A stretch of 64,000 nucleotides of DNA from contig CATNEN010000032.1 of assembly GCA_950097015.1 (NCBI GenBank), forward strand, positions 2,666,001 through 2,730,000. The letters are read 5' to 3'. This document shows, piece by piece, positions 3,796 to 49,300 of the stretch. Numbering within the stretch: position 1 is the first letter of the stretch; every line of letters begins with the position of its first letter. A program made the translations under genes and the position numbers. Source of the stretch: Macrostomum hystrix. Taxonomy: Eukaryota; Animalia; Platyhelminthes. The notes under the pieces are model-generated. The model was given only the letters and a program-made list of their open reading frames with translations, had not been told where the DNA came from and ran no database searches.

Positions 3796-4678
3796 CAGGG
3801 GTAGGCAAACTTATTTGCTGGCGGGCCAAAGAGAGAACCTAAAAGACGACAGCGGGCCGCATTGACTGTATAAATATGAGATAGGGGAGAGATGAGACAC
3901 GGGAGAGATGAGACACGGGAGAGATTAGACACAGGAGAGATAAGACACGGGAGAGATAAGACACGGGAGAGATGAGACACAGGAGAGATAAGACACGGGA
4001 GAGATGAGACACAGGAGAGATTAGACACGGGAGAGATGAGATACGGGAGAGATGAGACACGGGAGAGATGAGACACGGGAGAGATAAGACACGGGAGAGA
4101 TGAGACACAGGAGAGATTAGACACAGGAGAGATTAGACACGGGAGAGATGAGACACGGGAGAGATTAGACACGGGAGAGATAAGACACGGGAGAGATGAG
4201 ACACGGGAGAGATGAGACACGGGAGAGATAAGACACGGGAGAGATGAGACACGGGAGAGATTAGACACGGGAGAGATAAGACACGGGAGAGATGAGACAC
4301 GGGAGAGATTAGACACAGGAGAGATTAGACACGGGAGAGATGAGACACGGGAGAGATTAGACACGGGAGAGATAAGACACGGGAGAGATGAGACACGGGA
4401 GAGATTAGACACAGGAGAGATTAGACACGGGAGAGATGAGACACGGGAGAGATAAGACACGGGAGAGATAAGACAGGGGAGAGATTAGACACAGGAGAGA
4501 TGAGACACGGGAGAGATAAGACACGGGAGAGATGAGACACAGGAGAGATGAGACACGGGAGAGATAAGACACGAGAGAGATGAAACAGGGCACTGTAAAT
4601 GTCAGAAGGGGCAACGGGCAGGTTTTGGGAGCTTCGAGGGCCGCATCTGGCCCGTAGGCCGGAGTTTGCCGACCCCTG
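3796..4678 (+). mobile_element. hAT-type MITE with internal 16-bp minisatellite, copy 1 (883 bp)
   Basis: TIRs CAGGGGTAGGCAAACT / AGTTTGCCGACCCCTG; internal (GAGACACGGGAGAGAT)n. Flanking 8-mers do not match in this copy. Confidence 0.88.
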
Positions 4679-6281: not shown

Positions 6282-7042
6282 AGAAGCGGAAATAAGAGAC
6301 CAGCCGATATGTAGCGAAAGCTGTCAAATCAGCTTCTCATGGAATTGTGACAACAGAATTATGCATAAATAATGTTAGGAATTTTCAAACTTATTTAGTC
6401 CTCAAGCGTAAAAACTAAGCTAGTTAGAAATCGAATTGACAAAAACTCTTGCCCACAACCACAATGTTCGCAACGGTAACAAAGGTATGAATTTATGCAT
6501 TAACCTAGTTGTACTCTTCTAGTACACATTTCTTCTTTCGCAAAAGTTATTCCAGCTATTTGTAGCTAAAATTTCATGAACTATTTCAAATGGACCAATT
6601 TATATTTTTGTTTAATTTTTCTAGCTGATAATGGTACTAAACAAAGACGAAAAAACAAAAAGCAAAAATAACGACAGTAATTTCTGTAACAATTGGACTT
6701 GCAATGACAAAAGGCGCAAAGTTAAATATAATTAAGTGATTTTATTAATATGTTTTAATTTTTGCATCTCAGCCGATTTGGATTTTTAGAAGTTAAATTG
6801 TTGGTCAAGCCGGCAAATATGCTTCGCCACTACTGTAAGTAGTCAAATAGCGCACTATTCAAGGGACAGCAACTTTTAGCCACGACAGACAACAGCCAAA
6901 GCAGAGGAGAAAACTGTCGAAGAAAACGAAATTTCTTAGAAAAAAAGAAAAAAAATTCACTACAGGACAAAGAAGAATATATCTAATTTATGCTTACTAA
7001 CAACTTTAACAAAGTTTACAGATTTACAAATAACTCGTTTTT

Positions 7043-7358
7043 TACAGGGTTACCTGGTTACAGGGTTACCTGGTTACAGGGTTACCTGGTTACAGGGTTA
7101 CCTGGTTACAGGGTTACCTGGTTACAGGGTTACCTGGTTACAGGGTTACCTGGTTACAGGGTTACCTGGTTACAGGGTTACCTGGTTACAGGGTTACCTG
7201 GTTACAGGGTTACCTGGTTACAGGGTTACCTGGTTACAGGGTTACCTGGTTACAGGGTTACCTGGTTACAGGGTTACCTGGTTACAGGGTTACCTGGTTA
7301 CAGGGTTACCTGGTTACAGGGTTACCTGGTTACAGGGTTACCTGGTTACAGGGTTACA
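7043..7358. repeat. Homogeneous 16-bp tandem array
   Basis: (GGGTTACCTGGTTACA)n, about 20 identical units. Confidence 0.97.
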
Positions 7359-7494
7359 GTGATCATTGCACAAAAGAGTAAAACAAACAGATACAATATA
7401 CAAGAAGGTGCAGTATAATCCGGTCTAGTTAGTTGGGATTCTTTAATTTCTAAATAGTTTCGCAGAAAACTGGAAAAAATTGCTTGCGCAACAG

Positions 7495-13400: not shown

Positions 13401-16400
13401 TGACAGCTTGAGCATACCTAATAGGTACCTGTCTGCAGCTTTCTGCTCCTCTGAAATCCCATTTCCGTCTCCATCTATTCGATCATGCTTCGGTCTCTTT
13501 AGAATAATTTTTCTTGCATTTCCAGTTTTCCTGTTATATCCTTACGTCTGGTGACTGGTTTGAAATATAAATGTTTCGGAAGTGATTTGTGCTCGGACTA
13601 ATGGACTGAATATTGGAGAGAAATTGGTCTTTGAAAAATGGGCTAGACTTGGGACAGTAAAGTAGGGAATTACATTCTTGTTAACATGGTCACTGAATGA
13701 CCAAGATGGAAATAGATAATGACCCACTCACTTAATAAACGTGATGGAAATAGATAATGACCCACTCACTGAATGACCAAGATGGAAATAGATAATGACC
13801 CACTCACTGAGTGACCAAGATGGAAGTAGATAATGACCCACTCACTGAATGACCAAGATGGAAGTAGATAATGACCCACTCACTGAATGACTGTGATGGA
13901 AATAGATAATGACCCACTCACTGAATGACCAAGATGGAAATAGATAATGACCCACTCACTTAATAAACGTGATGGAAATAGATAATGACCCTCTCACTTA
14001 ATAAACGTGATGGAAATAGATAATGACCCACTCACTGAGTGACCAAGATGGAAGTAGATAATGACCCACTCACTGAGTGACCAAGATGGAAGTAGATAAT
14101 GACCCACTCACTGAGTGACCAAGATGGAAGTAGATAATGACCCACTCACTGAGTGACCAAGATGGAAGTAGATAATGACCCACTCACTGAATGACTGAGA
14201 TGGAAGTAGATAATGACCCACTCACTGAGTGACCAAGATGGAAATAGATAATGACCCACTCACTTAATAAACGTGATGGAAATAGATAATGACCCACTCA
14301 CTTAATAAACGTGATGGAAATAGATAATGACCCACTCACTTAATAAACGTGATGGAAATAGATAATGACCCACTCACTGAGTGACCAAGATGGAAGTAGA
14401 TAATGACCAAGAGGGAAATAGATAACGGACCCACTCACTGAATGACTGAGAGGGAAATAGATAACGGACCCACTCACTGAATGACTGAGATGGAAATAGA
14501 TAACGGACCCACTCACTGAATGACTAAGATGGAAGTAGATAACGGACCCACTCACTGAATGACCAAGGGGGAAGTAGGTTATGACTGGCGTTATGTTGTA
14601 GTTAGATAGCAATATAGAACTATGTGTTTAAGTTTAGTATCTAGGATATTTGAAAGCAGTTATTTCTGTTATTAATTCAGTCCAGCAGAATAAGACCAAC
14701 TTGATAAAATATCATCGAGCGGAGTAACAATTTCGTTGCCCGAGTGCAGATAAAATATTTGCCCACTGGAAAGGAACACGATATTCAATAAAAGCAAATA
14801 GGAAGTTACCGGAGAGGTGACAGCAGCTTAACTGTCAGAGTTCCCGCCTATGGATAAATTCTGGAAAAACACCGCCACACACACACCAAACAGACAGAAA
14901 GACGGACGGACAGCTCTCTAGGATTGTCTGATAAAACCTGAAGGCTCACCAACTATGCATGCGAACTATATACAGCATAATCATCTAGTGCAGGGGGTCG
15001 GCAAACTTATTACGACTCGTAGCAAGCGGGCCAAAAATAAAACCTAAAATACGACAGCGGGCCGCGCAAACTGCAGAAATCTAAGAGAAATATATCAGAG
15101 ATAGGGGAGAGATGAGAAACAGGAGAGATGAGAGAGAGAAGAGATGAGACAAAGGAGAGATATGGTACGGGAGAGACGAGACAATGGCGAGATGAGACAC
15201 TGGATAGATGAGACACGGGAGAGACGAGACATGGGAGAGATGACATACGGGAGAGATGGAGACACGGGAGAGATAAGACACAGGAGAGGTGAGACAATGG
15301 AGAGACAAGGCACGCAACAGACGAGAGATTGGAGAGATAAGACACGGGAGAGACGAGACAATGGAGAGATAAGACACGGGAGAGTTGACACACGGGAGAG
15401 ATGAGACAGGGGGAAAGGCAACACACGGGAGAGATGAGGCAGGGGAAAGATGAAACTGTATACAATAGGTGTCGGAACGGGCAACGGGCCGGATTTGGGA
15501 GCTTTGAGGGCCGCATCTGGCACGCGGGCCGGAGTTTGCCAACCCCTGATCTAGTGTATGCGGTAACATAATAGTAGAAAATAGTCATCTACTTCTACTG
15601 ACCCATTTCAGCAGGAAAGATGTGAAGCGCAGATAGTGCACGGCCCTAGCAACTTTCAATGGGGTGGGTGACTGGGCTTGCGTGGGATCAGGATAGTTCC
15701 CTACCCCCAGAGCGACCCGGGGAAATTGGGCAGAGGGGGGCGGTGGCTTGAGAATGGCGCGAATTCGAGTAGCCGCGGAGTGGGGTGGGTGAGGAGTCCG
15801 AGCGAATAAAATTAATGCAACTCCCATCGAAGGGCCTAAAGTTGATTGTCGGGGACGCGATGGCGACCTGTGGGCATAAAAATCCCTATTTTCTTTCTAG
15901 TCTCCAAGCACTGGGGCTGCCTTTCAGTTCTTCTAAAGTAGAAAAACAAGAACTGATCTTGATCTGATGCAGAGAAGGTGGCTTTGAGCGACGAAAAAAT
16001 CTTTTTTCTTGCTTTTAGTGATCAATTTAGATCCGTAAAATTCGAAAAATTTTAATTCTGACTGAAGCTAAGTACCTGTTCCATTTTGCGACCACAGGTG
16101 AGCAGTCAGATGGAGATAGTGAGGTGTCAGATTGGAGATAGTGAGGTGTCAGATGGAGACAGTGAGGTGTCAGATGGAGACAGTGTGGTGTCAGATGGAG
16201 ACAGTGTGGTGTCAGATGGAGACAGTGTAGTGTCAGATGGAGACAGTGTGGTGTCAGATGGAGATAGTGAGGTGTCAGATGGAGACAGTGTGGTGTCAGA
16301 TGGAGACAGTGTGGTGTCAGATTGGAGATAGTGAGGTGTCAGATGGAGACAGTGTGGTGTCAGATTGGAGATAGTGTGGTGTCAGATGGAGACAGTGTGG

Positions 16401-18676
16401 TGTCAGATGGAGACAGTGTGGTGTCAGATTGGAGATAGTGAGGTGTCAGATGAAGACAGTGAGGTGTCAGATGAAGACAGTGTGGTGTCAGATGAAGACA
16501 GTGAGGTGTCAGATGAAGACAGTGAGGTGTCAGATGAAGACAGTGTGGTGTCAGATGAAGACAGTGAGGTGTCAGTTAAGAGACAGCGAGGTGTCAAATA
16601 CGAGCAGCTTGATCTGTAAAAGGTAATCGAGGAATTAAGTTGCAGTTTCAAATCAGTCATTCCAAGCGGACTGTTATTTGATAACTCCAAGAATGCTGAA
16701 TCCTATCCTGTCAGAACTGGGAGGACTTGATGTTCCAGGTGCACAGACTGGTTGCGCGGTACCGCACTGAGGGTTGGCGAGTGGACCAGCCTAATAAATC
16801 ATAAAACACGTTGGGAGGACTTAATGTAAAGTTTACCATTCCGCTGCCAATCTACCTTTGGCAGGTAAATGCAATACTAGACTAGCTTATAGCCCAAACA
16901 TTAGGCTTGTTTTTCCCTGTGTGCGTGTGTGTGTGCCCGCATCTTCCCTATGGCTGCTCCTGCTGTAGAAAAGAATTATGGGAGCAACGGGAGCCAGATT
17001 TGGGCAATGGGAGGCAAGCAGAGACGAATGGGAATAGTCAAGCCGAAAATAGATTTAGGAGCATCGGAGATAGGATTTCACCGTTTGTTTTTTCGGTAGC
17101 TACTTAATTCGGGCCATATATTGCCAATCTGGTTACAGGCTGTACGGGCTGTACAACTAGGCAGTAGTACTGCAAAAATGCAGATAGTAGCGTACCCAGC
17201 CTGATGAATCACCCAGTATACAATGTACTCAGCGGGACGAGTCATCCGGCTAGCAATGTACATAGCCTGATGAATCACCCAGTATACAATGTACTCAGCG
17301 GGACGAGTCATCCGGCTAGCAATGTACATAGCCTGATGAATCACCCAGCATACAATGTACTCAGCGGGACGAGTCATCCGGCTAGCAATGTACATAGCCT
17401 GATGAATCACCCAGTATACAATGTACTCAGCGGGACGAGTCATCCGGCTAGCAATGTACATAGCCTGATGAATCACCCAGTATACAATGTACTCAGCGGG
17501 ACGAGTCATCCGGCTAGCAATGTACATAGCCTGATGAATCACCCAGCATACAATGTACTCATGAGTCAAATAGCTAATGATGTACACTGCCTTATGAGTC
17601 GCAAATGAGCATGACCATGAACAGTCATCCAGCTAGAGATGTACGCAGCCAGCCATACAGCAAGCGATGTACATAATCTAGCTAGGAATTTACACAGTCG
17701 GATAAATGGCCACCCGCACCTGCGGCATGATGCTGACAACGCTGACGAGCACGATGGTGGTCAGCAGCTTGGTGGTCCGGGTCGTCTGTTTGTCATCGTT
17801 GACAGCGGCCGCGTGCTGCTGATTGCCAGCTGGCGTCGCAGACTTGCCTCCGGAGCGCAGAGTCCGCCGACGCGCGTCCGTCCGCTTCAGCGACCTGATG
17901 AGGAAGATGCTGAGAATAGTGAGGAGCAGGACTGGGAGGAATTTTATGCCGATGCCGATGATCCAAAAGCAGAGGCTGTTCAGCACCGAGTCCTGCGAGA
18001 ACTTGAAGCCGAATGTGTAATAGGACGCGTTGATGTCCAGCCGGCAGGAGTTGAGGCGCAGGGCGACTATCTTGGAGTCGGTTGGTGTCACATGATGCCC
18101 CAGAGCATTTGGCACCACCATGCCGACTGAGGCGGCCGCTGCTAGACCGATGGCCAGGCGGGCGGTCCGCCCGGTGCACAGCTGCTTGCTCCGCACCGGC
18201 AGTTCAATGTAGACCAGGCGAAAAGCTGCTAGAGCCACCGTGATCCAGGAGCTGCAGGCGTGCGCGAAGATTGTTACGCACAGCTGAGCCCATAGAAACT
18301 GTTGCCACGGCAGCGGCTCGGGGCAGTCCAGCTTCAGCCGGTTGTTCATTGTGAAGTACAGGCAGAACGGCAGGTAGACACTGGACATCATACAGTCAGA
18401 GATTGCCAGCGCCATCAGCAAGGTGTTGGTCGGGTTGCGAATGGAGGGCTGTGAAAATACGGCGATATTGATGAGGTTGGTGGTGACACCCAGGCTGCAC
18501 ACGAATGTGGCCAGGTATTTGTGCACATCCGGGTAGCGACTGGACAGTGCGGCCAGGAGTTGGGGCACCGGGTCGCAGGCGGTCTGGTTGTCGAAGACCG
18601 CAGCGGACTCAGCCATATCGTCGAACTGATCGGAGCAAAGTTTTGAAATTTTATAATTGTTGTCGGTTATGAGCAT
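7495..18676 (-). CDS. Rhodopsin-family peptide GPCR, DmsR/myosuppressin-receptor-like (Srw type), 2 coding exons
   Basis: Exon 1 18676 (or ATG 18616) to 17720: HKYLATFVCSLGVTTNLINIAVF...RNPTNTLLMALAISD, HACSSWITVALAAFR. Donor CAG|GTGCGG, phase 0. Exon 2 7875-7495 after ATCCGCAG: AVLYFLL...LGDVFDLMTLFNHSINFFFYYGMSEQFR (TM7 and helix 8). Joined frame is continuous, 425-445 aa. Confidence 0.9.
7935..8227. repeat. 22-bp minisatellite next to the GPCR intron acceptor
   Basis: (ATCCCTAGATGAGGACCCATCT)n with 21-bp variants. Confidence 0.95.
8365..8545 (+). mobile_element. Decayed SINE, family B (CORE-like domain)
   Basis: TCCTTGAGAAAAATACTTGA...GAGTTCACCGAGCTTTTAAATGGGTGCCAGCAT...CAGTCCACGGACTGAA...CTTTGAAAGG matches the minus-strand copy at 22215-22400 and the split copy at 52655-53137. 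Confidence 0.6.
9150..9755. repeat. 20-bp minisatellite
   Basis: (GGTAGACAGTTGGTTGCTAT)n with degenerate edges. Confidence 0.95.
10845..13080. repeat. 20-bp minisatellite, ~2.2 kb
   Basis: (GGGATTCAAGGAAAGACACA)n with GCTACA and GATACA variant units. Confidence 0.97.
13690..14570. repeat. 38-bp minisatellite
   Basis: (GATGGAAATAGATAATGACCCACTCACTGAATGACCAA)n. Confidence 0.95.
14991..15548 (+). mobile_element. hAT-type MITE with internal minisatellite, copy 2 (558 bp)
   Basis: Ends CAGGGGGTCGGCAAACT / AGTTTGCCAACCCCTG; perfect 8-bp TSD ATCTAGTG on both sides; internal array is degenerate. Confidence 0.92.
16100..16590. repeat. 21-bp minisatellite
   Basis: (GTCAGATGGAGACAGTGTGGT)n. Confidence 0.95.
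17195..17560. repeat. 66-bp minisatellite near the GPCR intron donor
   Basis: AGCCTGATGAATCACCCAGTATACAATGTACTCAGCGGGACGAGTCATCCGGCTAGCAATGTACAT, about 5.5 copies, degenerate remnants to ~17660. Confidence 0.95.
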
Positions 18677-27442: not shown

Positions 27443-29384
27443 CTTAGTCTCGGATAGTCTTGATAGTACATCTATTCACTCGAGTAACACACAAGTCTCA
27501 GGTTTTTCTAACTTTGCGCTTTTCATGATCGCACTGTACATGCAGCTACAGCTCAAGTTCTGTGTAATGCCTTAGTAACACATATTTACAATTTTTTACA
27601 TCGGAACGTGGACGTTTGTATAGTATAGTATATAATAGTATATAGTCTACAGCTGCAACAGTAGACCGATTAATAAAAATGACTACTACCAGCGCGAAAA
27701 AGGACTTAAATTACTGTAAAAGTTTAGCGGGTTAACATAACGACTTTGACTATTATCAACAAATGCATTGTGCTTAAAGTACGTACTTGACTTATTAACA
27801 TGTTCTCTGACTCTTATATTATTTTTATAGCTTTTTAAAAAAAAGTGTAGTTTCTTTTTTATTATTTTATATTCATTTCAAACTTCATACAAAACGCTTT
27901 GCTCATTGTATGTTTGCAAATTCAATTAGAAAATATTCCCTGGCTTCTGAATCTTGCGCTCGAGTATTAAGCACACTACGTGTATGTTGTGGATTCGTTA
28001 CCTTTTGGTTTTTCGGATAGGCCCAGTTTAAGTAAGAAGCATTTAAGCACATGTGTTTGTATTTTAAATATAAACACTAGAATAAATATTTTTCATTGCC
28101 GCCCTATGTATCAACAGTAGTTATCATAGTTAAAAACATAACTATTCTTCCTACCGGCTGCCTTGGACAAGTTGGAGTGCCATATGGCATGAGTATTTCA
28201 ATTGGTCGTTAATGTCTCAAAAAGCATTTATGATTTAGCTACTAAATTCGAAGTTTATCTTAACTTGGCTAAAGTGTGCCAACTGCACTGTCTAAAGTTT
28301 CTTATATTGTTTACTCTCAGTGTTAATATTATCTGTCAATCCCCTGGACCTTTTTTATCTTTAACTAGCTAAACATGCTAGTTAGCATTAGCTGCTTAAT
28401 TTTTGTAGCCTGTATTGAAAGAACAGACCTAGATAAGTTATAGGGGCTCCAGTGAGAAATCAAAAATAACAAATTCCATGTTTTTGGTTTTCTTGTGTTA
28501 CAGATCTTGCTTGTCTGAGTTAGGCCTAAGACACCTAACTCATCAAAATTGGTCAAGTAATAAAAAAGTTATGATAATTTTTTGATCAACATTTTAGTTG
28601 TTTTCATAATTTATTTTTCCCATAAGGGGCTGTGATCCAGATGACAGGATAGATTTGACTTGGAAAACAAAAATTGCAATAACTTATTTATTTTTTTAAT
28701 GGATTTTGAGAATTCCAAAAGCATATAGTTCATTTTTTGTTATCTACACTATGGAGTATATATATCTTCTATAAATACTAAGTATCAAAGTATAAATTTC
28801 GATTTTAAATTGAATAGGATTACTATGCTGACAAGACATGTTTATTTTACAATATAAAACTCTTGGCTTTATAGAAGTGGCAAAGCCATACCTATATCAT
28901 ATCTTAACGTATAGACATCATATAGACATCAATTTACTATTTACAGTCAATTGCAAAAGCCATCTGAAATGTGTAAAGGGGGTACATTAGAGAAACATAT
29001 TTCTGGGAGATTCTGCTAAAGGAAAATAGAATGGTTTGAGTATATCCCATTCTACATAAAATTTTAATGAGTTACGCTTGGAAAACACTATAAACAATGG
29101 TTGAAAACAAAATATGAAACTTTCAAACAGAAAAGTTTATTAAACAAATAATTATTTTTCTTTTATAGAATTTTAAATTATCTTTCTAAATATTTACTTT
29201 GTTTGACTCAGTATCAACACAAAAATCAACACATATACCAAATTTGTGAAGTTATAATTTGGTATATGTAAATATTTACCATGCTTATGATTTATATTAG
29301 GTAACTAATTGTAACTTATGTCACTTTTGTTACTAATAATTTGGTTATTAACAGTAACATTATTAACAAACCATAGCATTTAAC

Positions 29385-29442
29385 ATGATGATACAATTAT
29401 TTTCCTGAACTGCAAGTGATGGTTCAAGCTCAACAGGACTGA
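29385..29442 (+). ncRNA. Box C/D snoRNA, copy 1, in the predicted 5'-UTR intron of the H2A gene
   Basis: C box ATGATGA 29385-29391, D' CTGA 29405-29408, C' GTGATGG 29416-29422, guide TCAAGCTCAACAGG 29424-29437, D box CTGA 29439-29442; flanked by donor AG|GTAACT (29301) and acceptor TTACTTTCAG (29533). Confidence 0.8.
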
Positions 29443-29561
29443 GAATTTTCTGCATTTACTTGCTTATTATTTGCTACTTATTTTTAGTCTTTTAAGAATA
29501 CTACACCTAAATTTTATTTTACATTACTTTCAGCTTAGTTAGCTTACCTACTTAGCTAATT

Positions 29562-30253
29562 ATGTCTGGACGCGCTGGTGGTAAGGCTGCTCGTAAGTCG
29601 ACTGGAAAGCAGCAGAAGAGCAAGTCTAACCGGGCTGGCTTGGTGATGCCAGTTGCCAGGGTGCATCGTTATCTAAAGCTTGGTCGCTATGGAAAGAAAA
29701 TTAGCGTTGGCGCCAGTGTCTACTTGGCCGCTGTATTGGAGTACCTGGTTGCTGAGGTCAATGAGCTGAGTGGTGAGTTTGATCAATGTGCTTCCTGTCA
29801 ATTATGATTTTCCGAAGCTATAGGTTAGGTTTTTTACATTCTTAACCATTGCGTTAATTTTTTCTGTATAATGAATCAATTATGATGATAAAATACTTCC
29901 ATCCGGACCAAATTAATACTCATGACGGTTCAAGCTCAACAGGACTGAAAATCGTTGCGTGTTTGTTGTTTTATGTGCTTAAATTTTCTTGTTTTGCTAC
30001 TGTGAGTAGTTCATATAATAATATTTTTTCTGCTTTATTTAAAAAACCAACACTAGGCAACGCTGCAGTCGCCAATAAGCGCAAGACTATTACGCCGCGC
30101 CACATTATGCTGGGCGTGCGCAACGATGCCGAGCTCAATGAGTTACTCAAACACGTCCACATCAGTTTCGGCGGTGTGCTGCCGTCCATTCATCCCGTGC
30201 TGCTGAAGAAGAAAGGCAGCGTGCCGGCTGTGCCGCAGAGCAAAAGCGCTTAA
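29562..30253 (+). CDS. H2A: Divergent intron-containing histone H2A variant (135 aa)
   Basis: Exons 29562-29772 and 30057-30253 (phase 1, G|GTGAGT...CTAG|GC): [32 protein letters not shown]|[36 protein letters not shown]. No histone stem-loop seen after the stop. Confidence 0.95.
29882..29948 (+). ncRNA. Box C/D snoRNA, copy 2, in the H2A coding intron
   Basis: C box ATGATGA 29882-29888, C' ATGACGG 29922-29928, identical guide TCAAGCTCAACAGG 29930-29943, D box CTGA 29945-29948; 108 nt upstream of the 3' splice site. Confidence 0.8.
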
Positions 30254-33200
30254 GAGAAAGGAAAAGAGACCGGAGAATTCTACGAAAACTCGGGCGCTTT
30301 ATTTAAAATGTAGTCCGGCGGCAGCAATGTGACTCTCTTAGTGTTCTTCAAATTAGAGCTGATGCGATTTCAATTTACTTGTTAATTATCTTTTTACCTT
30401 TAGACATACTTTGCTCCTTAATTTGTTAAATACTATCTCATCATTTTATTCGCGCTAACAATACGAAAAAAGCAGTTAGCTTTATTCTCCTATTCACTTT
30501 TTAAGCTGTTGTTTTACCTGGCAATTGTGCTCTTTTTCATCAATTTTCCATTTTAATCACGCAACCCCATTTACAACTGGCTCGTGTTGTTTTGGCTCCC
30601 ATTGGTTCATTTATGTATAAATCGCCACTGATACGTGTGCTCTGCTGTTTTGTGTACAAAATATTGCAAATTGTCATTTCTGCTACATATTCACAGTTAT
30701 TTGTTATTAGTTTAAGCCTTTTATAATAATTAACTATGAAATTTGGTCTTTAATATGTATATTAATTGTATTTTAGTATTGTATTTTTCTGGTACAGTAA
30801 TTTACCGGGATTTATGAGGTTAAATGGTTTTTTTATTGTAAAAATAGTGAGTCAAAGACTGTTTTGTACGCAGCGAAGTTGAAATTTGCTTTTCTCTAAT
30901 AAAATATATATTGCTAAACTCAAAATAATGGCCGGGTTTCAAGTTATTCCTGTTAAATTTAGTACTTTTAGTATGAGCAGCAAAACAAGAAGCAGGTTGT
31001 CTTACTAGACTTTGTCGTGAAATTTTCTGAGCACGTTGAACTCAAATAATAATGTCCGAGTTGATGTGAACGACAACGTTCTCGTATACATGTCATTGAC
31101 TATGACATGTTAGTGAAGGTGTGAATCAACTAATTGCAGCAGTCCAATTGAATAGGAATGTTGCCATAAGCTACATCGTGAAAGCGATACAATAAGTGAA
31201 GCCGGGAACGCAGTCTGTTGGCAACTGCACTGAATGATGGCTTTGCCCATTATTTACACTGGATTGAATCGCACAGCTTTATCTTAGCTTCGTTAAGAAA
31301 CTAAGAACGAAGTTTCTTAGAACTAAGAACCTGTTTGAGTTTGATTATCAAACAGGCTAAACAGTCCTTGATTGAAAGCATGTGAGAAGCGTCGTGTGAT
31401 CTTTTGAGTTGCGGGTGACTCGGCGCGGTGCAGGTCCGGTGGTTGCTGGCGGCAATTGTCACTGCTCATGACAGCTCGACGTCTGAGAAGCGAGCGCTGT
31501 ATAACGGCTGCGCTGGGCATGCCGGCGATTGGGGTGGAAGCGGAGTGGCCACATCTTGTCTATGCCGCATTAGCATGTCATAATCAAAGTTCGTGGATTG
31601 GAAACTGAGCTTACTTACGGTTACAGGTAATATATCCTCTATTAGATGTGTCCCTCACCCCGTTTTAGCTTGCGGGAAGCTAAAGCAGCTCGCTGGCTGC
31701 CACAAGAACCCACTCTTTGGTAATAGACCTTCACTGCTTGTTGTTTACCCAAGCTGTCGTGTTTATAAACTTTAGAACTGTCGAGTCAGCTTGGACCGTT
31801 GTGAATATATTTACATCTAGAGGACATATGATCTGTCACTTACAGTACGTGGATCTTTACTACGTTTTAAATATTTGTCCAAGCATGGTAGAATATAAAA
31901 AATATAATTATTCATGCATTCGCTAGGATTATTTCGCTACGTTAATTGCATTCCTGCGCAGGTGCAAATATTATTGGAAAATGAATTGGCTTGCATTTAC
32001 TATTGCGTAGTACAGAGATATTGTGTGGCTTTGAGATTCATTCAACAATAGTGTTGCTGCTATAGTAGAGAATGCCTTAATTCTGAATAGACGTCTAAAT
32101 AGACTCAGGCTCTGCTCAGCAGGTGGGGAATGGAGTCAAAATAAATGGCATGTTACACAATGCCCAGACTGACGAAGGCAGGCATCAGGTGGCCGCATTG
32201 AAATACATCTGCAGTTATAATATATATACAGGCCACATTAGTTAAATGCTCAACTGCATGGGTGTGAGTTTGAATAGAACCTCTGCAGTTGGTGGGGCAT
32301 TTTTAACAATGCCGCCATTTATATGGAAAGAAAGAATTAAGTTAAGCTTCGTCAGCCATGTGAAAATAGATTGCCTTTAGTGGATGGTTTGAGCATATAG
32401 AGTTGTGTGCTCGAGTCCGACGTGCCTAGTCATGCGTGTCACGCGCAATGTGATCAAACTTGAGTATAAGCTCAGCTAACTAAATACTAGCGTACATTGC
32501 ACGCAGCCATTGGAGAATCTTCTTTCTTTCTTCTGCTGCTGCATGCTGGCCTCCTAAACCCCCCGTCCTCCTGAGTGAGCATTCAAGCTAAACTGCATGC
32601 TCAAACTCATTCCAAACACTAGCCCTCTAACAATGGCCCGTGGAGCGGGGTTGGCGGCTGCTGTGTGAGGGTAAGGAAGGGGTGTCGTGCACCCCCCCAC
32701 CATCGGGACCTGTACAAAAGGCGCTACTCGACTGTGCTAGCTTTTAGTAAATAATAAGATAGTCTCTTATAAGAGAATTTCGTGTTGGTTAATTGTGTGC
32801 CATTAATATTTTACCCGAGAGCTACTGGGCGAGAGCAAGGTGACATGCGAAGCAGAGACTAGTTTGAAATGACCTGTTTTGTGAAACTCGGGTCTTTCTG
32901 ACAAAGGAAAACACTGCTCGTGTCTCGTATTGCACCTTCCCCGCTCATACGCGATCGGACTCAATCATCAGCACCGTCTAATGCCCATTGCTCCCACGAA
33001 CCATCGATAAAATTATGATTTAAAATATTACCAATGTGATCCCCACTATAGTCAGCATGGGGTTTGTGTGCCAATCAGACTTTAACACGCGCCATTAACG
33101 GGTGAAAGCTGTGGATCAAGAATTCGAATGCAGCAGTGCAGTAATCTGCTTGTGCATGGCATGTATTCATATGTCTATCTTATCAGATCATTGCTTCATA

Positions 33201-33720: not shown

Positions 33721-33897
33721 ATTCAGTATGTAGGTATAAAAATGGAGTATTTAAGTGTGCCAAACCAGGCTGTAGGTACTGTATCATATTCAGTTGATGA
33801 AGATCCAAAGTCAAACTGTAGATATTCAACCTCAGTCTGTAGATATCGTTATTCGCACCGTAGACAAGCGCAGGTCATTCAGACGCATGTGCCAACA

Positions 33898-36800
33898 ATG
33901 TCTCGGGCCCGTCAGTACGCCATCTCTTTGCTGATATCGGCAGTTCTGACTGCGATCTCGTTTTCGAATGTCTGCGAATCTGCCTGCGGCTACAACGGCT
34001 GTCCGGTCGCCGTGCCGCGCCGCGTAAATTTGCACCTGGTGCCGCACACTCACGACGACGTCGGCTGGTTGAGGACGGTGGACCAGTATTACTATTTCAA
34101 TGTGCAGTTTATACTGGACAATGTGGTTAAAGAGTTGCTTAGCAACCCGCAGAGAAAGTTCACCTACGTTGAGATGGCCTACTTCTATCGCTGGTGGCGA
34201 GAGCAGAACAATGCCACAAGGGATCAGGTACTGTTCCCTAATAGGGGCTTGAAGTGGAAACATTCTTGGACAAGATTTTAACTGACTGCCAGGTGGGGCT
34301 ATTGCGACTGGGCTACCTGTTAGACAGATGTGTTACCTGTGAGACAGATGTGTTACCTGTGAGACAGATGTGTTATCTGTTAGAGCGGTAGGCAAACTTA
34401 TTTGCTGGCGGGCCAAAGAGAGAACCTAAAAGACGACAGCGGGCCGCATTGACTGTATAAATATGAGATAGGGAAGAGATGAGACACGGGAGAGATGAGA
34501 CACGGGAGAAGATGAGACACAGGAGAGATTAGACACGGGAGAGATTAGACACGGGAGAGATTAGACACAGAAAGATTATACACGAGAGAGATGAGACACG
34601 GGAGAGATAAGACAGGGGAGAGATTAGACACGAGAGAGATGAAACAGGACACTGTAGATGTCAGAAGGGGCAACGGGCCGGATTTGGGAGCTTCGAGGGC
34701 CGCATCTGGCCCGCGGGCCGGAGTTTGCCGACCCCTGTGTTAGACAGATGTCTCACCCGTTAGACAGATGTATTAACTGTTAGACAAGTGCGGTTATGTC
34801 AGCTGGCAGACACTAGTCGCAGGAGAACACGATTGGTCGATTGGATCGATTTAAGTCTGAATTATAAGAACACTACTGAAAGTAGATTTGTGAGGGACAT
34901 GGCCACCGAAATTGATTCCATTCCGGCAATCCCGCAGGTCCGCACTCTTGTTAGCAGCGGTCAGTTGCACTTCGCCCAAGGCGGCTGGTGCATGAACGAT
35001 GAAGCGACCACTCACTATGCGGACATTGTGGACCAGCAAACTATCGGCATGCGCTTTCTCAATGACACATTCGGCGACTGCGGCCGGCCGCGTGTCGGCT
35101 GGCAGATCGACCCCTTCGGGCACAGCAAGGAGCACGCGGCCCTGCTGGCACAGATGGGCCTGGACGCCTTTTACTTCGCCAGGATCCACTTCTTGGACGA
35201 GGTGGAGCGAGTGCTCAGACGGCGGATGCAGTTTGTGAGCTCCAGCTGGGGTCGAAATCTTTCGAAATTTATTTACGTCGAAATTTAGTTACGCCGAAAT
35301 TTAGTTACGTCGAAATTTAGTTACGCCGAAATTTAGTTACGCCGAAATTTAGTTACGTCGAAATTTATTTACGTCGAAATTTATTTACGCCGAAATTTAG
35401 TTACGCCGAAATTTAGTTACGTCGAAATTTATTTACGCCGAAATTTATTTACGCCGAAATTTATTTACGCCGAAATTTAGTTACGCCGAAATTTAGTTAC
35501 GTCGAAATTTAGTTACGCCGAAATTTAATTACGCCGAAATTTAGTTACGCCGAAATTTATTTACGCCGAAATTTAGTTACGTCGAAATTTATTTACGTCG
35601 AAATTTAGTTACGTCGAAATTTATTTACGTCGAAATTTATTTACGTCGAAATTTATTTACGTCGAAATTTATTTACGTCGAAATTTATTTACGTCGAAAT
35701 TTATTTACGTCGAAATTTATTTACGTCGAAATTTATTTACGTCGAAATTTATTTACGTCGAAATTTATTTACGTCGAAATTTATTTACGTCGAAATTTAG
35801 TTGAGATTATCACCTCCGCAACCGACCAGGTCTGGCGGGCAAGCGAAGACCTCGGCAGCCCGGTGGCCGACATTTTCGCTGGAGATTTCCTCGCCGGCTA
35901 TTGCTACCCGCTCGGCACCAACTACGAAGGCGGCAATCAGCCAGTGCAAGACGATCCGCAACTCCACGACTTCAACGTTGAAGAAGCCGTCAGAAAATTC
36001 ATCGTCCAAGTCGACCTGCTTCGACTGACGCATCGAACTAGCCACCTGTTGCTAACAATGGGCTGCGACTTTGCCTACGAGAATGCCAGGAAAAATTTCA
36101 AAATAATTGACAAACTCATTGCGGCGGTGAACGCTAACACCAGTCAGCACAATCTGACTGCCTACTATAGTACACCCGACTGCTACACCAAGGCTGTTAA
36201 CGACGAGGGCCTGGCCTACTCCGTCAAGACTGACGACTTCTTTCCCTACGCATCTGGGCCGAACTCCTACTGGACAGGCTTCTACAGCAGCCGACCAGCT
36301 CTGAAGCTGCTGGTCCGCCAGGCCTCTGGCCATCTTCAGGCTGTCAAGCAGTTGGCAGCGGTAGGCCCGACCGCAGCCAGCGGGCTGGACGATTTGCGAC
36401 AGGCGTTGGGCGTAGCGCAGCATCACGACGCGGTTGCCGGCAAGATCTTCTGGGGAAATTTTTGTGATTCTAAACTGGGGAGCGACAGGAGTTGATAGCG
36501 GAGTGACAGGAATTGATAGCGGGGTGACAGGAGTTGATAGCGGAGCGACAGGAGTTGATAGCGGAGTGACAGGAGTTGATAGCGGAGCGACAGGAGTTGA
36601 TAGCGGAGCGACAGGAGTTGATAGCGGAGTGACAGGAGTTGATAGCGGAGCGACAGGAGTTGATAGCGGAGTGACAGGAGTTGATAGCGGAGTGACAGGA
36701 ATTGATAGCGGAGTGACAGGAATTGATAGCCGAGTGACAGGAATTGATAGCAGCCGATGAGTCGCGCCCGTGTCCCGCCATGCAGGCACCGAGAAGCAGG

Positions 36801-38519
36801 TGGTGGCCTATGACTATGCACTGCGCATAGCTAACGGCATTGCGTCAAGCGACCCGGTCTGGCGATCAAGGCTGGCCCAGCTGCAGTTCGGCAACTCCAG
36901 CCAGCAGGCCGGCCTGGCCTCCTGTCCGCTGCTGAACATCTCCTATTGTCCGCAATCTGAGCGGTTCTCCGTGCGATTCTACGTCACTTTCTACAATCCG
37001 ACTAGCTGGACGGTTCGACATTCCGCCAGGCTGCCCGTCACCGGGCGCTTCTATCGCGTGCTGGACGATACCGGTGCCATCGTCGCCTCCCAGACGGTTC
37101 CAATTAACAATGGCAGCCTTCGAGTGCCCGAGAGAAATTTGTCGATTGCCATCAATGACCTGGCATTCGATGTTGCAGCGATTCCACCTCTGGGCTACGT
37201 TGTCTATTCGGTGGAGCCGTGCAATGCATCTGATCCGGGGGCGTCTGTATTTACGCCCATACTACTGCGAGTAGGCCGGATGGCTAACTCTGTGACACCT
37301 GGCTTGGCTTATTATGTGGGCGTGCGAGGCAACGCTAGCGGGGAGCAGTTCCGACCGTCTGGGGCTTACGTATTCAGGTAAAAGTGTGCTCAGGAAAATG
37401 TGTGTTCAGGTAGAAGTGTGCTCAGGAAAATGTGTGCTCAGGTGGACTTAAAGCCTCATTTTTCCACTCCGTAGGCCAACTACTGACCGGCCCCAGATGC
37501 TAGCGGCGCGCATTCAAGGCCAAGTGACTGGCCCGGTTGTAAACGAGACCCATTGGGACTACAATGGCTGGGCATACTTGGTTGCTAGGCAGCGTCAGTC
37601 GACCGGCTCGGACTATGAGGAGGCCGAAGCAACCGTCGGGCCTTTGCCGCTGGACGATGGCATCGGTCGCGAGGTTGTCGCAGTTTACCAGGCCAACGGA
37701 CTAGCGGCGGCAAGCGACGAGTTTCTTGTCGACTCGAATGGTCGCCAGATGATGCGGGCGCGGCGCGATCCGAACCGGCCGGAAGCGGCGCAGTTCCGAC
37801 CGGCGAATGCCATCGTAAGCGTGGCTGACGCCACCAGCCAGCTGACTGTGCTGCCGGATCGTGCCGCAGCTGCGTCGGTGCGTCCAACCGAGGGCCAGCT
37901 GACTGTCATGCTGCACCGGGTGACGCTCGACGACGACGGCTTCGGAGTTGGCGAAGCTCTGCAAGAGCGCGGCTCCGACGGTCAGGGCTTGGTGGTCAAG
38001 TCCAGTCACTGGTACTTCCTGACGGACCCGTCCTCGGCTGCCGATCGGTACCGACGGCTGGCCAGCCAGCGGCATCGCGCCCCTCTAGTAGCATTCTCCT
38101 CCATGCAGCCTCGAGCCAGCTGGCGCAGATGGAGCGCTTTGAAAGCTCCGCTGCCGAACAGCGTCCAGATTCTCACACTGGAGCCGTGGCGACAATCGCC
38201 AGACCGCCTGCTGCTGCGCTTGGAGCACATCTTCCAGTCGAACGAGTCGTCGACGCATTCGAAGCCGATTAGTATCGATCTAAGCGCCACGTTTGCCACC
38301 TTCGACATTCTGGAGGCGACTGAGTTGAACTTGTCCGCTAATCAGCGCTTGGCAGATCAGAGCCGGTTGAAGTGGCGCTCCACACAAAAGCAACACAAGT
38401 TTGTAGATTCTATGAATGGAAAACATAAAAAACCTGCTTTAGAATTGCCAGCTCTGACTGTTACCCTACGGCCTATGGAGATCAGAACTTTCGAAATTAG
38501 AGTTTTGTATAAAGCCTGA
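33898..38519 (+). CDS. MAN2B1: Lysosomal alpha-mannosidase (GH38), 5 exons, ~957 aa
   Basis: Exons 33898-34227, 34938-35234, 35830-36439, 36786-37377, 37475-38519, all phase-consistent. Signal peptide, [32 protein letters not shown] (nucleophile), [25 protein letters not shown]. Confidence 0.95.
34383..34737 (+). mobile_element. hAT-type MITE with internal minisatellite, copy 3 (~355 bp), inserted in a 20-bp array in MAN2B1 intron 1
   Basis: Left end damaged (GAGCGGTAGGCAAACT), right end AGTTTGCCGACCCCTG; TGTTAGA on both flanks; host array (TAGACAGATGTGTTACCTGT)n on both sides. Confidence 0.88.
35252..35800. repeat. 16-bp minisatellite filling MAN2B1 intron 2
   Basis: (CGAAATTTATTTACGT)n with TAGT and GC variants. 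Confidence 0.96.
36480..36752. repeat. 21-bp minisatellite filling MAN2B1 intron 3
   Basis: (GACAGGAGTTGATAGCGGAGT)n. Confidence 0.96.
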
Positions 38520-44105: not shown

Positions 44106-44779
44106 CGCGTGAGTCCTCGCCTTTCCTCTGCAGATTACTCATAGTAGGTACACAATTTGAGCTTTACAGTTGCGACTTTCCTTTCAGATCCTAGGATAAT
44201 AAGCATCCTAGGCAACCGTCAGCTAATTGTGCTATCAGCAGTAGACCATCGTGCAGAAGCAGACTTCAAGAAAAATTTGTTATGTGCAAAAATGACCTGG
44301 CCTTACATGTGTAACTATTAAATATAACTATGCGCTATATGCATTATATTTGTTTGTTTGTTCCGATAAGTTCCACAGCAACCGTCCCTGATGATTTTCA
44401 TGGCACCCAACCCGCCCCACCACTCACGCATGTCAGTTAGTGCTTAATTTTGCTTAAAACACATCTTACTAATGTTTTGCTTTATGTGGAATCAATATTG
44501 CTGAACCTTATTTTGCTTTCTTCAAGCTTGTTCAATTTGTTTTTTGTTTCTTTTTTTGTTAGAAAATTAGTTATTTACACTTTTAAATTAGTATTTGCTA
44601 AAGATTTTTAACCTAAACTAGAATTTTATACCAAACAATTGGCTAGTTGTAAATTATTCTCGACTTGAATGCATAATCACTTGTTCGCTGCATCACAGTT
44701 TATATTATGTTGCTGTATTAACTTGATAATCATTGCTGCTTCTTGTCTGCTTTCCCTCGACAACAACTGGCGAATCATA

Positions 44780-45245
44780 TCCCTATCCCATTACTCTCGC
44801 CTTATCCCATATCCCTGGCCCAAATTTCCTTCATTTCTCTCGCCCCATCACATTTCCCTCGCCCATCCCATATCCCTCGCCCTATCCTATATCCCTCGCC
44901 CTATCCTATATCCCTCGCCTATCCTATATCCCTCGCCCTATCCTATATCCCTCGCCCTATCCCATATCCCTCGCCCTATCCTATATCCCTCGCCCTATCC
45001 TATATCCCTCGCCCTATCCCATATCCCTCGCCCTATCCTATATCCCTCGCCCTATCCCATATCCCTCGCTCTATCCCATATCCCCCGCCCTATCCTATAT
45101 CCCTCGCCCTATCCCATATCCCTCGCCCTATCCTATATCCCTCGCCCTATCCCATATCCCTCGCCCTATCCCATATCCCTCGCCCTATCCTATATCCCTC
45201 GCCCTATCCCATATCCCTCGCCCTATCCTATATCCCTCGCCCCCG
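44780..45245. repeat. 19-bp pyrimidine-rich minisatellite
   Basis: (ATCCCTCGCCCTATCCYAT)n. Confidence 0.95.
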
Positions 45246-46369
45246 TCTCTTCAATAATTTAATAGTGATTATCAGCACTAATTTGAATTGCACTTGTCTA
45301 ATCAGGGACCGCCATGATTTCTATACCTCTTAGACAACAACGCTAGTGAGTGCTTGTCAAACACAATTCGATAGCCCTCTTGATCCTCACGATGGAATGG
45401 GGAGTTATCTAGATCTATGTTGCCGGACTATCTGGTACGGATATTTAATTTTGAATTGCATATATTCAGTCATTCGCAAGTCTCTTCTCCTATCTATTTA
45501 TCATAGAGGTGTTGGCAGTCTCTTAGTTATCTTTAGCTATGCTTCAAGCTAAAGTACATGCTCAATTCTAAGCTTATGATAGAAAAGCATTGTTCCAATG
45601 GCGACCCTATTTCTCTAACAAATCTACGTTAAAGTATTTAAAGTAACCTACGTGCTAGATGGTTTTAATAAATTTTATCCCATAATTTGTGCATATAATA
45701 GCAATGAAAATTCATTGATTCTGCATTAAAAATTCTGTAGAAGCAAAAACTCCCTGACTACCTGACTATTGAAAGGTGAACAATTTAATTTCTTGTCTCT
45801 TACCTATTGAACTGGAAATTTCTGAAATCCCAAAGTTTTAGAATTCATCCAATTTGAAATTCCTTAAATTGCATCAATTTTAGGCACTACTAACCTCATT
45901 TTCAGCCGAATTAATTGTCTGATCGCAAAATACACGAGGGCAGCTCATGTTAATTATGTTTGTTTTTTTGTATTTATTTTGTTCTCATCAGAGCCAAAAC
46001 ACTCAGCTATCCCATCTCATCAATAATATGCTTGCTGATTGACTTTGTAATGTTTTGTTCCTTCCGACCCAACACTCTTCTGTCTCCTGTCTGGCTATTT
46101 GGTTTTCTGTCTTGAATAATAAAAGCAAATAAAGTTATTTAAGCCTATCCGAACACCATGTAATTTCATTGTACATTGCGTTTGTCCTTTTAGCAAATTC
46201 ACATCCAACTGAAAACAATTTCACGAGCATTTGCTTTTTTGGACTCCATTTATTTTTTATCGCGAACTAAGTTTTAGCTGGAGCTTGTAGGATAAAAATA
46301 TTGATTGAACCGTTTGGTAGACATGGGGGATTTGTTACCTGCCAACCGTAGCTAATATTCACCATTTTT

Positions 46370-49300
46370 ATGATGAGTTCCCCAACTATTGCAGCTCATC
46401 GAACTGTCAAACAAATGAGCTCTCTATGCCTGAACTTGGAGTATGAGCTGCAGATTATCGACCAGCTGATCGCTAATCTGAATGTTGAAAAGGTGAGTTC
46501 GAAGTTTGACTCACAATCCAGAATCCGGAACTACGAATCAAGAATCCGGGACTACAAATCCTGAATCTGGGAGTGGGACTACAAATCCAGAATCTGGGAC
46601 TACTTATCCTGAATCCCGGACTACTAATCCAGAATCTGGGACTACTTATCCTGAATCTGGGACTACTTATCCTGAATCTGGGACTACTAATCCAGAATCT
46701 GGAACTACAAATCCTGAATCTGGGACTACTTATCCTGAATCTGGGACTACTTATCCTGTATCCGGGACTACGAATCAAGAATCTGGGACTGCAAATCCAG
46801 AATCTGGGACTACTTATCCTGAATCCGGGACTACTAATCCAGAATCTGGGACTACTTATCCTGAATCCGGGACTACTAATCCAGAATCTGGAACTACAAA
46901 TCCTGAATCTGGGACTACTTATCCTGAATCTGGGACTACTTATCCTGTATCCGGGACTACGAATCAAGAATCTGGGACTGCAAATCCAGAATCTGGGACT
47001 ACTTATCCTGAATCCGGGACTACTAATCCAGAATCTGGGACTACAAATCCTGAATCTGGGACTACTTATCCTGAATCCGGGACTACTTATCCAGAATCTG
47101 GGACTACTTATCCTGAATCTGGGACTACTTATCCTGTATCCGGGACTACGAATCAAGAATCCGGGACTACAAATCCTGAATCTGGGACTACAAATCCTGA
47201 ATCTGGGACTACTTATCCTGAATCTGGGACTACTAATCCAGAATCCGGGACTACAAATCCTGAATCTGGGACTACAAATCCTGAATCTGGGACTACAAAT
47301 CCTGAATCCGGGACTACTAATCCTGAATCTGGGACTACTAATCCAGGGCTATTAATCCAGAATCCGTGGCTACTAATCCAGAATCCAGGGCTACTAATCC
47401 AGAATCCAGGCTACTAATCCAAAATCCATGGCTACTAATCCAGAATCCGTGGCTACTAATCCAGAATCCAAGGCTACTAATCCAGAATCCATGGCTACTT
47501 ATCCAGAATCCGTGGCTACTAATCCAGAATCCAGGGCTACTCTCAGAATCCAGGGCTACTAATCCAGAATCCGTTGCTACTTATCCAGAATCCATGGCTA
47601 CTAATCCAGAATCCAGGCTACTAATCCAGAATCCAGGCTACTAATCCAGAATCCAGGGCTACTAATCCAGAATCCATGGCTACTAATCCAGAATCCGTGG
47701 CTACTAATCCAGGATCCATGGCTACTTATCCCGAATCCATGGCTACTAATCCAGAATCCATGGCTACTAATTCAGAATCCGTGGCTACTAATCCAGAATC
47801 CGTGGCTACTAATCCAGAATCCAGGGCTACTAATCCAGAATCCGTGGCTACTTATCCAGAATCCGTGGCTACTAATCCAGAATCCGTGGCTACTAATCCA
47901 GAATCCGTGGCTACTAATCCAGAAATCAGGGCTACTAATCCAGAATCCATGGCTACTAATCCAGAATCCAGGGCTACTAATCCAGAATCCGTGGCTACTT
48001 ATCCAGAATCCATGGCTACTAATCCAGAATCCAGGGCTACTAATCCAGAATCCGTTGCTACTTATCCAGAATCCGTGGCTACTAATCCAGAATCCGTGGC
48101 TACTAATCCAGAATCCGTGGCTACTTATCCAGAATCCATGGCTACTAATCCAGAATCCAGGGCTACTAATCCAGAATCCGTGGCTACTTATCCAGAATCC
48201 GTGGCTACTAATCCAGAATCCATGGCTACTAATCCAGAATCCTTGGCTACTTATCCAGAATCCATGGCTACTAATCCAGAATCCAGGGCTACTAATCCAG
48301 AATCCGTGGCTACTTATCCAGAATCCATGGCTACTAATCCAGAATCCAGGGCTACTAATCCAGAATCCATGGCTACTAATCCAGAATCCATGGCTACTAA
48401 TCCAGAATCCAGGGCTACTAATCCAGAATCCGTGGCTACTTATCCAGAATCCGTGGCTACTAATCCCGAATCCATGGCTACTAATCCAAAATCCATGACT
48501 ACTAATCCAGAATCCGTGGCTACTAATCCAGAATCCGTGGCAAATTATCCAGAATCCATGGCTACTTATCCAGAATCCGTGGCTACTAATCCAGAATCCG
48601 TGGCAAATTATCCAGAATCCATGGCTACTTATCCAGAATCCGTGGCTACTAATCCAGAATCCGTGGCAAATTATCCAGAATCCATGGCTACTAATCCGAA
48701 ATCCGTGGCTACTAATCCAGAATCTAGGGCTACTAATCCAGAATCCAGGGCTACTAATCCAGAATCCATGGCTACTAATCCAGAATCCGTTGCTACTTAT
48801 CCAGAATCCGTGGCTACTAATCCAGAATCCATGGCTACTAATCCAGAATCCGTGGCTACTAATCCAGAATCCGTGGCTACTTATCCAGAATCCGTGGCTA
48901 CTAATCCAGAATCCAGGGCTACTAATCCAGAATCCGTGGCTACTTATCCAGAATCCGTGGCTACTAATCCAAAATCCATGACTACTAATCCAGAATCCGT
49001 GGCTACTAATCCAGAATCCGTGGCAAATTATCCAGAATCCATGGCTACTAATCCGAAATCCGTGGCTACTTATCCAGAATCCGTGGCTACTAATCCAAAA
49101 TCCATGACTACTAATCCAGAATCTAGGGCTACTAATCCAGAATCCAGGGCTACTAATCCAGAATCCAGGGCTACTAATCCAGAATCCGTTGCTACTTATC
49201 CAGAATCCATGGCTACTAATCCAGAATCCAGGGCTACTAATCCAGAATCCGTGGCTACTTATCCAGAATCCGTGGCTACTTATCCAGAATCCAGGGCTAC

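Follow-up and report, generated by a model that had tools for sequence, protein, structure and literature searches.

Within the nucleosome, the L1 loop is the contact site between the two copies of H2A, Arg77 of H2A is one of the minor-groove arginines, and the acidic patch is the docking site of the H4 tail and of arginine-anchor proteins. Canonical H2A tails read GGKAR(A/Q)K, and histone H3 carries ARKSTG at residues 7 to 12 and KAARKS at residues 23 to 28. To our knowledge, families of histone variants known from animals are few, and a new one is usually a sign of lineage-specific chromatin biology. Mimics of H3 that bear ARKS or ARKT form an established class in other nuclear proteins (for example, PMC3022755; 10.1101/2025.10.22.683908).

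A 64,000-nucleotide stretch of DNA from Macrostomum hystrix (the window) was analyzed for an H2A gene whose tail overlaps the two H3 hexamers, each matched exactly, in the octamer KAARKSTG. The preliminary description of this gene had placed the octamer in the tail of an H2A whose start is encoded at positions 29562 to 29606, which was confirmed by translation.

Gene structure and transcripts

In order to define the gene model, transcript contigs from four public runs (three organisms, two studies), 95 to 100% alike to the window, were placed on positions 28300 to 31400. Joining 29772 to 30057 gives a protein of 135 residues (Table 1). The 284-nt GT..AG intron is absent from the contigs of all four runs, so that the introns of the preliminary description come down to a single one. 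That description had also pointed to the GTAAGT hexamer within the motif as a potential donor that would splice the motif out. Splicing at this site was not seen in the four transcript assemblies: three contigs run unbroken across 29533 to 29771, tail codons included, and a fourth (X4) begins at 29599. The hexamer is absent from M. lignano, where AGA AAA TCT stands at the position of CGT AAG TCG, and it is thus an accident of codon choice. Since it is unused as a donor, KAARKSTG is present in the mature mRNA. No contig of the four runs was spliced at GTAAGG at 29581. The sole coding difference among the contigs, 29597 G>A in one run, is synonymous and changes AAG to AAA in the codon of the ARK lysine.

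Table 1. Features of the H2A variant gene in the window
Feature	Positions	Strand	Remarks
Trans-splice AG acceptor	29532-29533	+	mRNA body from 29534; contigs X1, X5, X6
5' UTR	29534-29561	+	28 nt; sequence and contig joints
Coding exon 1	29562-29772	+	M1 to S70 and first base of G71; translation and contigs
KAARKSTG codons (K8-G15)	29583-29606	+	Translation
GTAAGT in CGT AAG TCG	29593-29598	+	Unused cryptic donor; contigs
Basic L1 loop region, residues 39-48	29676-29705	+	Translation
Intron, phase 1	29773-30056	+	284 nt, GTGAGT..CTAG; contig joints
Coding exon 2	30057-30253	+	Remainder of G71 to A135 and TAA; translation
Acidic-patch helix NDAELNE	30122-30142	+	E91A and K95E, human numbering
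3' UTR	30254-30973	+	As far as contigs reach; AATAAA at 30898-30903

Upstream of 29533, contigs X1, X5 and X6 carry ...CTGCGAAGACTCAATTTATTGCAT. This end continues the M. lignano forward primer CGGTCTCTTACTGCGAAGACT, applied to a transcript flagged as trans-spliced (PMC5173321 supplementary file 6), and was therefore read as the Macrostomum spliced leader. The mRNA of the H2A variant is trans-spliced to this leader at the AG at 29532 to 29533. The AUG of the leader opens only a three-codon upstream reading frame (ATG CTT AGT TAG), and the true start codon is that at 29562. The contigs end at 30866 to 30982 without a poly(A) tail, which places the length of the 3' UTR at at least 610 to 730 nt. 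The 5' ends compared for the leader were those of the window gene at 29533, of L011 and of L001 to L003. The L011 mRNA, a third Macrostomum-type mRNA that encodes protein P0251, bears the same spliced leader as the window gene. A related but distinct leader (...GGTCTCTAATTTGGCGAAGTTGCAATTCATTGCATG) is found on the contigs encoding P0007, suggesting a macrostomorphan relative in marine metatranscriptomes.

Two copies of an element resembling a C/D-box snoRNA flank the first coding exon, one ahead of the trans-splice site, within the outron (29381-29450), and one in the intron (29879-29953). Their core repeats (29417-29446 and 29923-29952) are 93% alike, both copies are conserved at corresponding places in M. 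lignano L007, and an Rfam scan returned no family for these elements. Downstream of the variant, a gene for a GH38 lysosomal alpha-mannosidase is found both in the window (33742-38519) and in M. lignano L007 (5584-6016), and this synteny is kept despite a DNA identity of about 71%. Minisatellite arrays occur at 3795-4460, 6990-7418, 11534-12376, 15010-15588, 17078-17608, 36052-36821, 44669-45333, 46473-49646, 56513-57031 and 62311-62955. They yield long artefactual open reading frames on both strands, the largest array (about 46.5 to 49.6 kb) giving repeat frames of 624 residues.

Assignment to H2A and exclusion of known variants

The Histone domain (PF00125) was matched by Pfam in exon 1 and Histone_H2A_C (PF16211) in exon 2, the latter with an E-value of 1.5e-14. 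In a phmmer search of the PDB, chains of canonical H2A and of H2A.X were matched with E-values of 1e-37 to 5e-43; the best 60 PDB matches were all canonical H2A, H2A.X or H2A.J, with no H2A.Z chain among them. The helix order of an AlphaFold2 model, although of low confidence, also fits H2A.

Membership in each described class was then considered. H2A.X was rejected because the C-terminus of the variant lacks SQ(E/D), and no member of the clade described below ends in SQE/D. H2A.Z was rejected too, as the variant shares neither L1 loop nor docking sequence with it, and M. lignano has a separate H2A.Z (H2AFV). A macroH2A or a short H2A (B, L, P, Q) was rejected on the basis of the length of 135 residues, a complete docking segment and the retention of five of the six H2A acidic-patch residues. 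The RNAi gene Mlig-h2a was discarded as the orthologue of the window gene, as it is H2A.Z (H2AFV) (PMC5173321). The status of an H2A variant, which the preliminary description had proposed, is thereby well supported.

A flatworm-restricted clade of H2A

The closest protein is M. lignano P0001, with 127 of 135 residues identical (94%) and tail residues 1 to 22 all identical; at the DNA level, the window is only about 71% identical to M. lignano, which assigns it to a different Macrostomum species. In each of the three M. lignano loci, an intron matches that of the window gene in position and phase. A word-index search performed with P0001 returned 17 proteins at 169 to 279 bits, with all other H2As at 152 bits or below. 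In a maximum-likelihood tree of 111 H2As, the 16 full-length members fell on one branch with an SH-aLRT support of 98 and a stem of 0.68.

Seventeen residues are diagnostic of the clade, defined as positions at which the clade residue occurs in at least 85% of clade sequences and in at most 6% of 95 other H2As. In human numbering these are Q24V, F25M, G44S, L63N, A66S, R71K, D72A, T76K, R77T, Q84M, A86G, E91A, K95E, G98K, T101H, A113P and P117K, and all of them fall in the histone fold and the docking domain. G44S goes with the basic L1 loop, R77T with T76K makes up the L2 change, E91A and K95E are the acidic-patch pair, and T101H, A113P and P117K concern docking and the C-terminus.

A profile scan of all 1.84 billion 50%-identity representatives placed the clade clusters at 178 to 299 bits in a single match and the plateau of ordinary H2As at 170 bits or below, with intermediate scores corresponding to fused double-H2A gene models. 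Among the 142 other top representatives, none had more than one of eight signature motifs, and this exhaustive scan gave no further member. A third word-index search, using the clade alignment, was swamped by fish models that fuse two H2As and yielded no new member. Named taxa, drawn from 90% clusters, comprise trematodes (Schistosoma, Heterobilharzia, Paragonimus, Opisthorchis, Clonorchis, Fasciola, Fasciolopsis, Dicrocoelium and Calicophoron), cestodes (Echinococcus, Taenia, Hymenolepis, Rodentolepis, Mesocestoides, Schistocephalus, Anoplocephala, Hydatigena and Dibothriocephalus), M. lignano, and a monogenean fragment from Protopolystoma. Mesocestoides corti holds both the variant (P0014) and an H2A ending in SQEY (P0088), indicating that the variant adds to the ordinary H2A set rather than replacing it. 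The sequence comparisons thus give good support to a discrete H2A variant family that appears restricted to flatworms.

In the literature searched for peptide signatures of the clade, for ARKS in H2A tails and for H2A variants peculiar to flatworms, neither the clade nor an H2A with ARKS was described; a paper on an Echinococcus H2A epitope was rejected as such a description, as it concerns other accessions. The clade is apparently undescribed, and no name for it was found.

Gene structure and C-termini vary among members. The intron lies in phase 1 within the Gly of NELSG in Macrostomum and about eight codons later in Schistosoma (L009 and L010), where it is single and about 2.4 kb long. The coding sequence of L004 (P0012) has no intron, and a splice acceptor stands 4 nt before its ATG. 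Trematode and cestode orthologues carry a C-terminal extension of 30 to 50 residues rich in Ser, Gly and Ala (seen in P0003, P0005, P0010, P0013 to P0015 and P0261 to P0265) that Macrostomum lacks; the trematode extensions and some others share a recurring S-x-R-Q stretch (SARQA, SSRQAS, SGRQG).

The ARK motif within Macrostomum and across the clade

Three Macrostomum-type coding sequences (window, M. lignano and L011) were compared for constraint on the tail. KAARKSTG is unchanged in all three, while seven of its eight codons differ synonymously, which points to purifying selection. Tail pS ranges from 0.43 to 0.87 and pN from 0.02 to 0.06; residues 1 to 17 show no amino-acid change at all, residues 18 to 23 vary, and by comparison of pN with pS the constraint on the tail matches that on the histone fold. 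Within Macrostomum, purifying selection thus acts on the tail, whose conservation alone does not tell which property is selected. In the AlphaFold2 model, residues 1 to 16 and 18 to 20 have pLDDT values below 50, and the tail is therefore predicted to be disordered, with A-R-K-S/T lying in its exposed segment (residues 8 to 15).

Across the clade, the tails share the core G-K-(A)-A-R-K-x-x-G, and A-R-K itself is found in 41 of 42. The residue that follows is Pro in 27, Ala in 6, Thr in 5 and Ser in 3. Ser is that of the Macrostomum sequences and Thr that of P0007/P0252 and P0012/P0253/P0254, so that Ser or Thr after ARK is confined to 8 of 42 tails, from Macrostomum-type and transcriptome sequences. 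Ala occurs in schistosomes and opisthorchiids, and the named parasites have Pro or Ala. Conservation of the motif in orthologues, a check named in the preliminary description, therefore holds for close relatives, despite saturated synonymous divergence, and fails for distant ones, in which Ser is exchanged for Pro or Ala. The check on close relatives and that on splicing at GTAAGT, either of which could have spoken against the hypothesis of histone mimicry, both turned out in its favor. With Pro or Ala in place of Ser, the conserved ARK lysine cannot serve as a methyl/phospho switch throughout the family. The sole tail without A-R-K, that of P0008 (L005), has GKVKKPSTG instead of GKARKP; its VKKP is identical to H3 residues 35 to 38, the context of K36. 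The L005 contig looks chimeric, its H2A gene being immediately preceded by the end of a coding sequence for EF-1-alpha.

Outside the clade the motif is rare. Of 96 other H2A tails, two contain ARK and one of these ARKS, while a further 149 tails, mostly vertebrate, contain no ARK, giving 2 of 245 in all; ARK(S) is rarer in H2A tails than tail composition would predict. The single ARKS tail among the 96, ...GGKARAARKSRS, belongs to P0037, an H2A of canonical type (GLQFPV, NDEE), and it shows that an ordinary H2A tail can acquire ARKS. Given the canonical form GGKAR(A/Q)K, ARK is one residue from the ancestral state, and its derivation from a tail of the GGKARAK type by a one-residue rearrangement weakens the word mimicry.

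Changes on the nucleosome surface

Both surface features noted in the preliminary description, the basic L1 loop and NDAE at 30122 to 30133, were recovered by translation, and K95E is added here as a second clade-wide change of the acidic patch. In most of the clade, GRY in L1 is followed by basic residues, with GRYARR in 32 sequences. The E91 position is Ala in 50 of 53 clade sequences, and the R77 position is occupied by Thr, an Arg or Lys having moved two places earlier. The AlphaFold2 model, built from a 12-row alignment with a mean pLDDT of 58.7, serves only for tail disorder and helix order. Because its confidence is low, the structural consequences were inferred from known nucleosome structures.

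By analogy with these structures, the basic GRY-x-K/R-K/R loop should favor particular pairings or add a DNA contact. E91A together with K95E would relocate negative charge within the acidic patch, along its alpha-C helix, and T101H, A113P and P117K are expected to fall in the strand and the tail by which H2A docks on H3-H4. A variant H2A-H2B dimer, presumably deposited independently of replication, would thus alter L1-L1 pairing, the L2 contact with DNA, the docking surface for arginine anchors and the H4 tail, and the strand docking on H3-H4.

Probable replication independence and expression

The lack of a histone 3' stem-loop, claimed from the start, was borne out in three ways: an Rfam E-value scan of 28500 to 31500 returned no stem-loop family, a search with the stem-loop consensus pattern found nothing near the H2A variant gene, and the 77 nt past the stop codon folded no better than shuffled sequence. 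Six-frame translation of the 64-kb window revealed no hallmark motifs of H2B, H3 or H4 and no second H2A, and the neighbors of the gene are a GPCR-like open reading frame and the GH38 alpha-mannosidase. The replication-independent character suggested earlier thus agrees with the intron, with the lack of a stem-loop, with the length of the 3' UTR and with a solitary position outside any histone cluster.

Expression data were available for M. lignano Cluster-7993.7643, a trans-spliced transcript of 1038 nt with H2AFX as its best human match (9e-36) and Echinococcus A0A068WX00 as its best UniRef50 match (7e-52) (PMC5173321 supplementary file 2). As A0A068WX00 belongs to cluster 6 of the clade, this transcript is very probably the M. 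lignano orthologue, a link made by the annotated best UniRef50 match rather than by sequence comparison. The row came from a phrase search; a search of the supplement by trematode and cestode UniProt identifiers returned no orthologue row. The transcript has a logCPM of 6.3 to 7.0 in G1-sorted cells, is about 1.8-fold higher in S/G2/M (logFC 0.85 to 0.93) and falls by 0.62 at 72 h post irradiation; it is listed as S/G2/M-enriched and as 'Neoblast', outside the stringent set (PMC5173321 supplementary file 2). These values point to broad expression with a modest enrichment in proliferating cells.

The H2AFX label on this transcript derives from the best human match, although the clade lacks SQ(E/D) (PMC5173321 supplementary file 2), and gene-ontology results that count the orthologue as H2A.X would mislead. 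Other data sets label clade members 'Late histone H2A.L3' or 'hypothetical protein'; with such labels, as with 'H2AFX', the variant can be mistaken for other histones.

Interpretation of the tail

We consider it probable that an expressed, one-intron, trans-spliced, solitary gene encodes a member of a discrete flatworm H2A clade in which the ARK lysine, on an exposed tail, is a selected site of modification or interaction. In Macrostomum and a few other lineages, the adjacent Ser or Thr would complete an exact cassette of the H3K9/K27 type. That enzymes of this type detectably methylate the ARK lysine in Macrostomum is possible, if somewhat doubtful, and reading by a chromodomain with a phospho-switch is unlikely to be a real function; a family-wide phospho-switch is excluded by the orthologues with Pro or Ala. 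Mimicry of H3 is, on this sequence evidence, plausible in Macrostomum and not a family-wide property. The fullest form of the proposal, in which K12 (counting Met) is methylated by H3K9 or H3K27 enzymes or both, bound by chromodomains of HP1 or Polycomb and released through phosphorylation of S13 by an Aurora-type kinase, we regard as improbable; it would give the variant a second switch of the H3 type. It draws on the exact match to both H3 hexamers, on the persistence of the motif under saturated synonymous change in three Macrostomum-type species, on ARKT in the two further lineages, on the precedent of such mimics in other nuclear proteins and on the EZH, SUV39 and SETDB enzymes that flatworms encode (table, PMC4159997). 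However, Ser or Thr is absent from 34 of 42 clade tails, so that the switch cannot explain the clade-wide conservation of ARK. The likeness covers just eight residues of low complexity, and the canonical-type P0037 has ARKS too. Against the reading of a selected ARK site stand the possible plain inheritance of ARK from the canonical GGKARAK tail and the Pro or Ala that follows ARK in 33 of 42 tails; Pro at this position should not suit recognition of the G9a or Aurora type.

A coincidental likeness is the alternative that we take most seriously after the selected ARK site, as a tentative possibility: the tail would be a generic basic, acetylatable, DNA-binding segment derived from canonical GGKARAK, and the surface of the histone fold would be what matters. 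This agrees with the GGKAR already present in canonical tails, with the invariance of the whole tail, beyond ARK, within Neodermata, with a following residue that varies among S, T, P and A, and with the confinement of all 17 diagnostic residues to the fold and docking domain. Yet ARK persists in nearly all clade tails across very deep divergences while adjacent tail positions change, it is very rare in other H2A tails, and Macrostomum holds the exact octamer while residues 18 to 23 vary. It is very improbable that the gene encodes no functional variant, whether because it is a pseudogene or an annotation artefact, because it is the canonical H2A or H2A.X of the species, or because the motif is spliced out at GTAAGT. 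The H2AFX label of the probable M. lignano orthologue in one published data set (PMC5173321) and the strong donor-like hexamer inside the motif speak for this; against it stand the open reading frame with pN far below pS, transcription in four runs and transcript contigs without a splice joint at 29593. The C-terminus lacks SQ(E/D), variant and SQEY-ending H2A occur together in one cestode species, and the gene is solitary, with an intron and without a stem-loop. The pseudogene, canonical H2A and GTAAGT-donor readings were rejected, being contradicted by the transcripts, by pN well below pS and by the co-occurrence of P0014 and P0088.

The selected ARK site, our preferred reading, concerns a variant whose conservation extends from Macrostomum, which is free-living, to Schistosoma, Fasciola, Echinococcus and Taenia, which include major human parasites. 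The variant alters the L1 loop and the acidic patch, the arginine of L2 and the docking domain, all of them nucleosome surfaces used by regulators. The lineage-specific C-terminal extension of the parasite orthologues is absent from host histones. A usual marker of mitosis in flatworms is H3S10ph, and the ARKSTG and KAARKS epitopes could cross-react with antibodies against H3K9me, H3K27me or H3S10ph. A phylum-wide H2A variant whose ARK cassette is written and read by the heterochromatin or Polycomb machinery, with a phospho-switch in Macrostomum, is quite unlikely; if true, variant nucleosomes would show extra H3-like tails on a surface with a reshaped acidic patch. As M. lignano is tractable to transgenesis, the mimicry hypothesis is directly testable.

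Comparison with known systems

Like canonical H2A and H2A.X, the variant begins with SGR and retains the AGLxxPV anchor, five of six acidic-patch residues and the GGVLP docking motif, together with a KK pair where K118/K119 stand. It differs from them at the 17 diagnostic positions, in lacking SQ(E/D), and in a gene that contains an intron, is trans-spliced and solitary and has no 3' stem-loop. The resemblance to H2A.Z is one of kind, as the variant, too, is probably replication-independent and has a divergent L1 loop and an acidic patch altered in the same turn of alpha-C; H2A.Z changes N94 and K95, whereas the flatworm variant changes E91 and K95. As in the ARKS/ARKT mimics of H3 (K26 of H1.4, the automethylation sites of G9a and SETDB1, and ADNP), A-R-K-S/T lies in an exposed, disordered segment of a nuclear protein. 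Unlike in those mimics, the motif here sits on the tail of a core histone, and most family members have ARKP or ARKA. Finally, the variant is similar to plant H2A.W and to the mammalian short H2A.B, H2A.L, H2A.P and H2A.Q in that it is an H2A peculiar to one clade, has a tail motif of its own and changes the surfaces of the nucleosome. It stands apart from these in having no C-terminal SPKK motif, an unshortened docking domain and an acidic patch that is reshaped rather than lost, and in belonging to Platyhelminthes.
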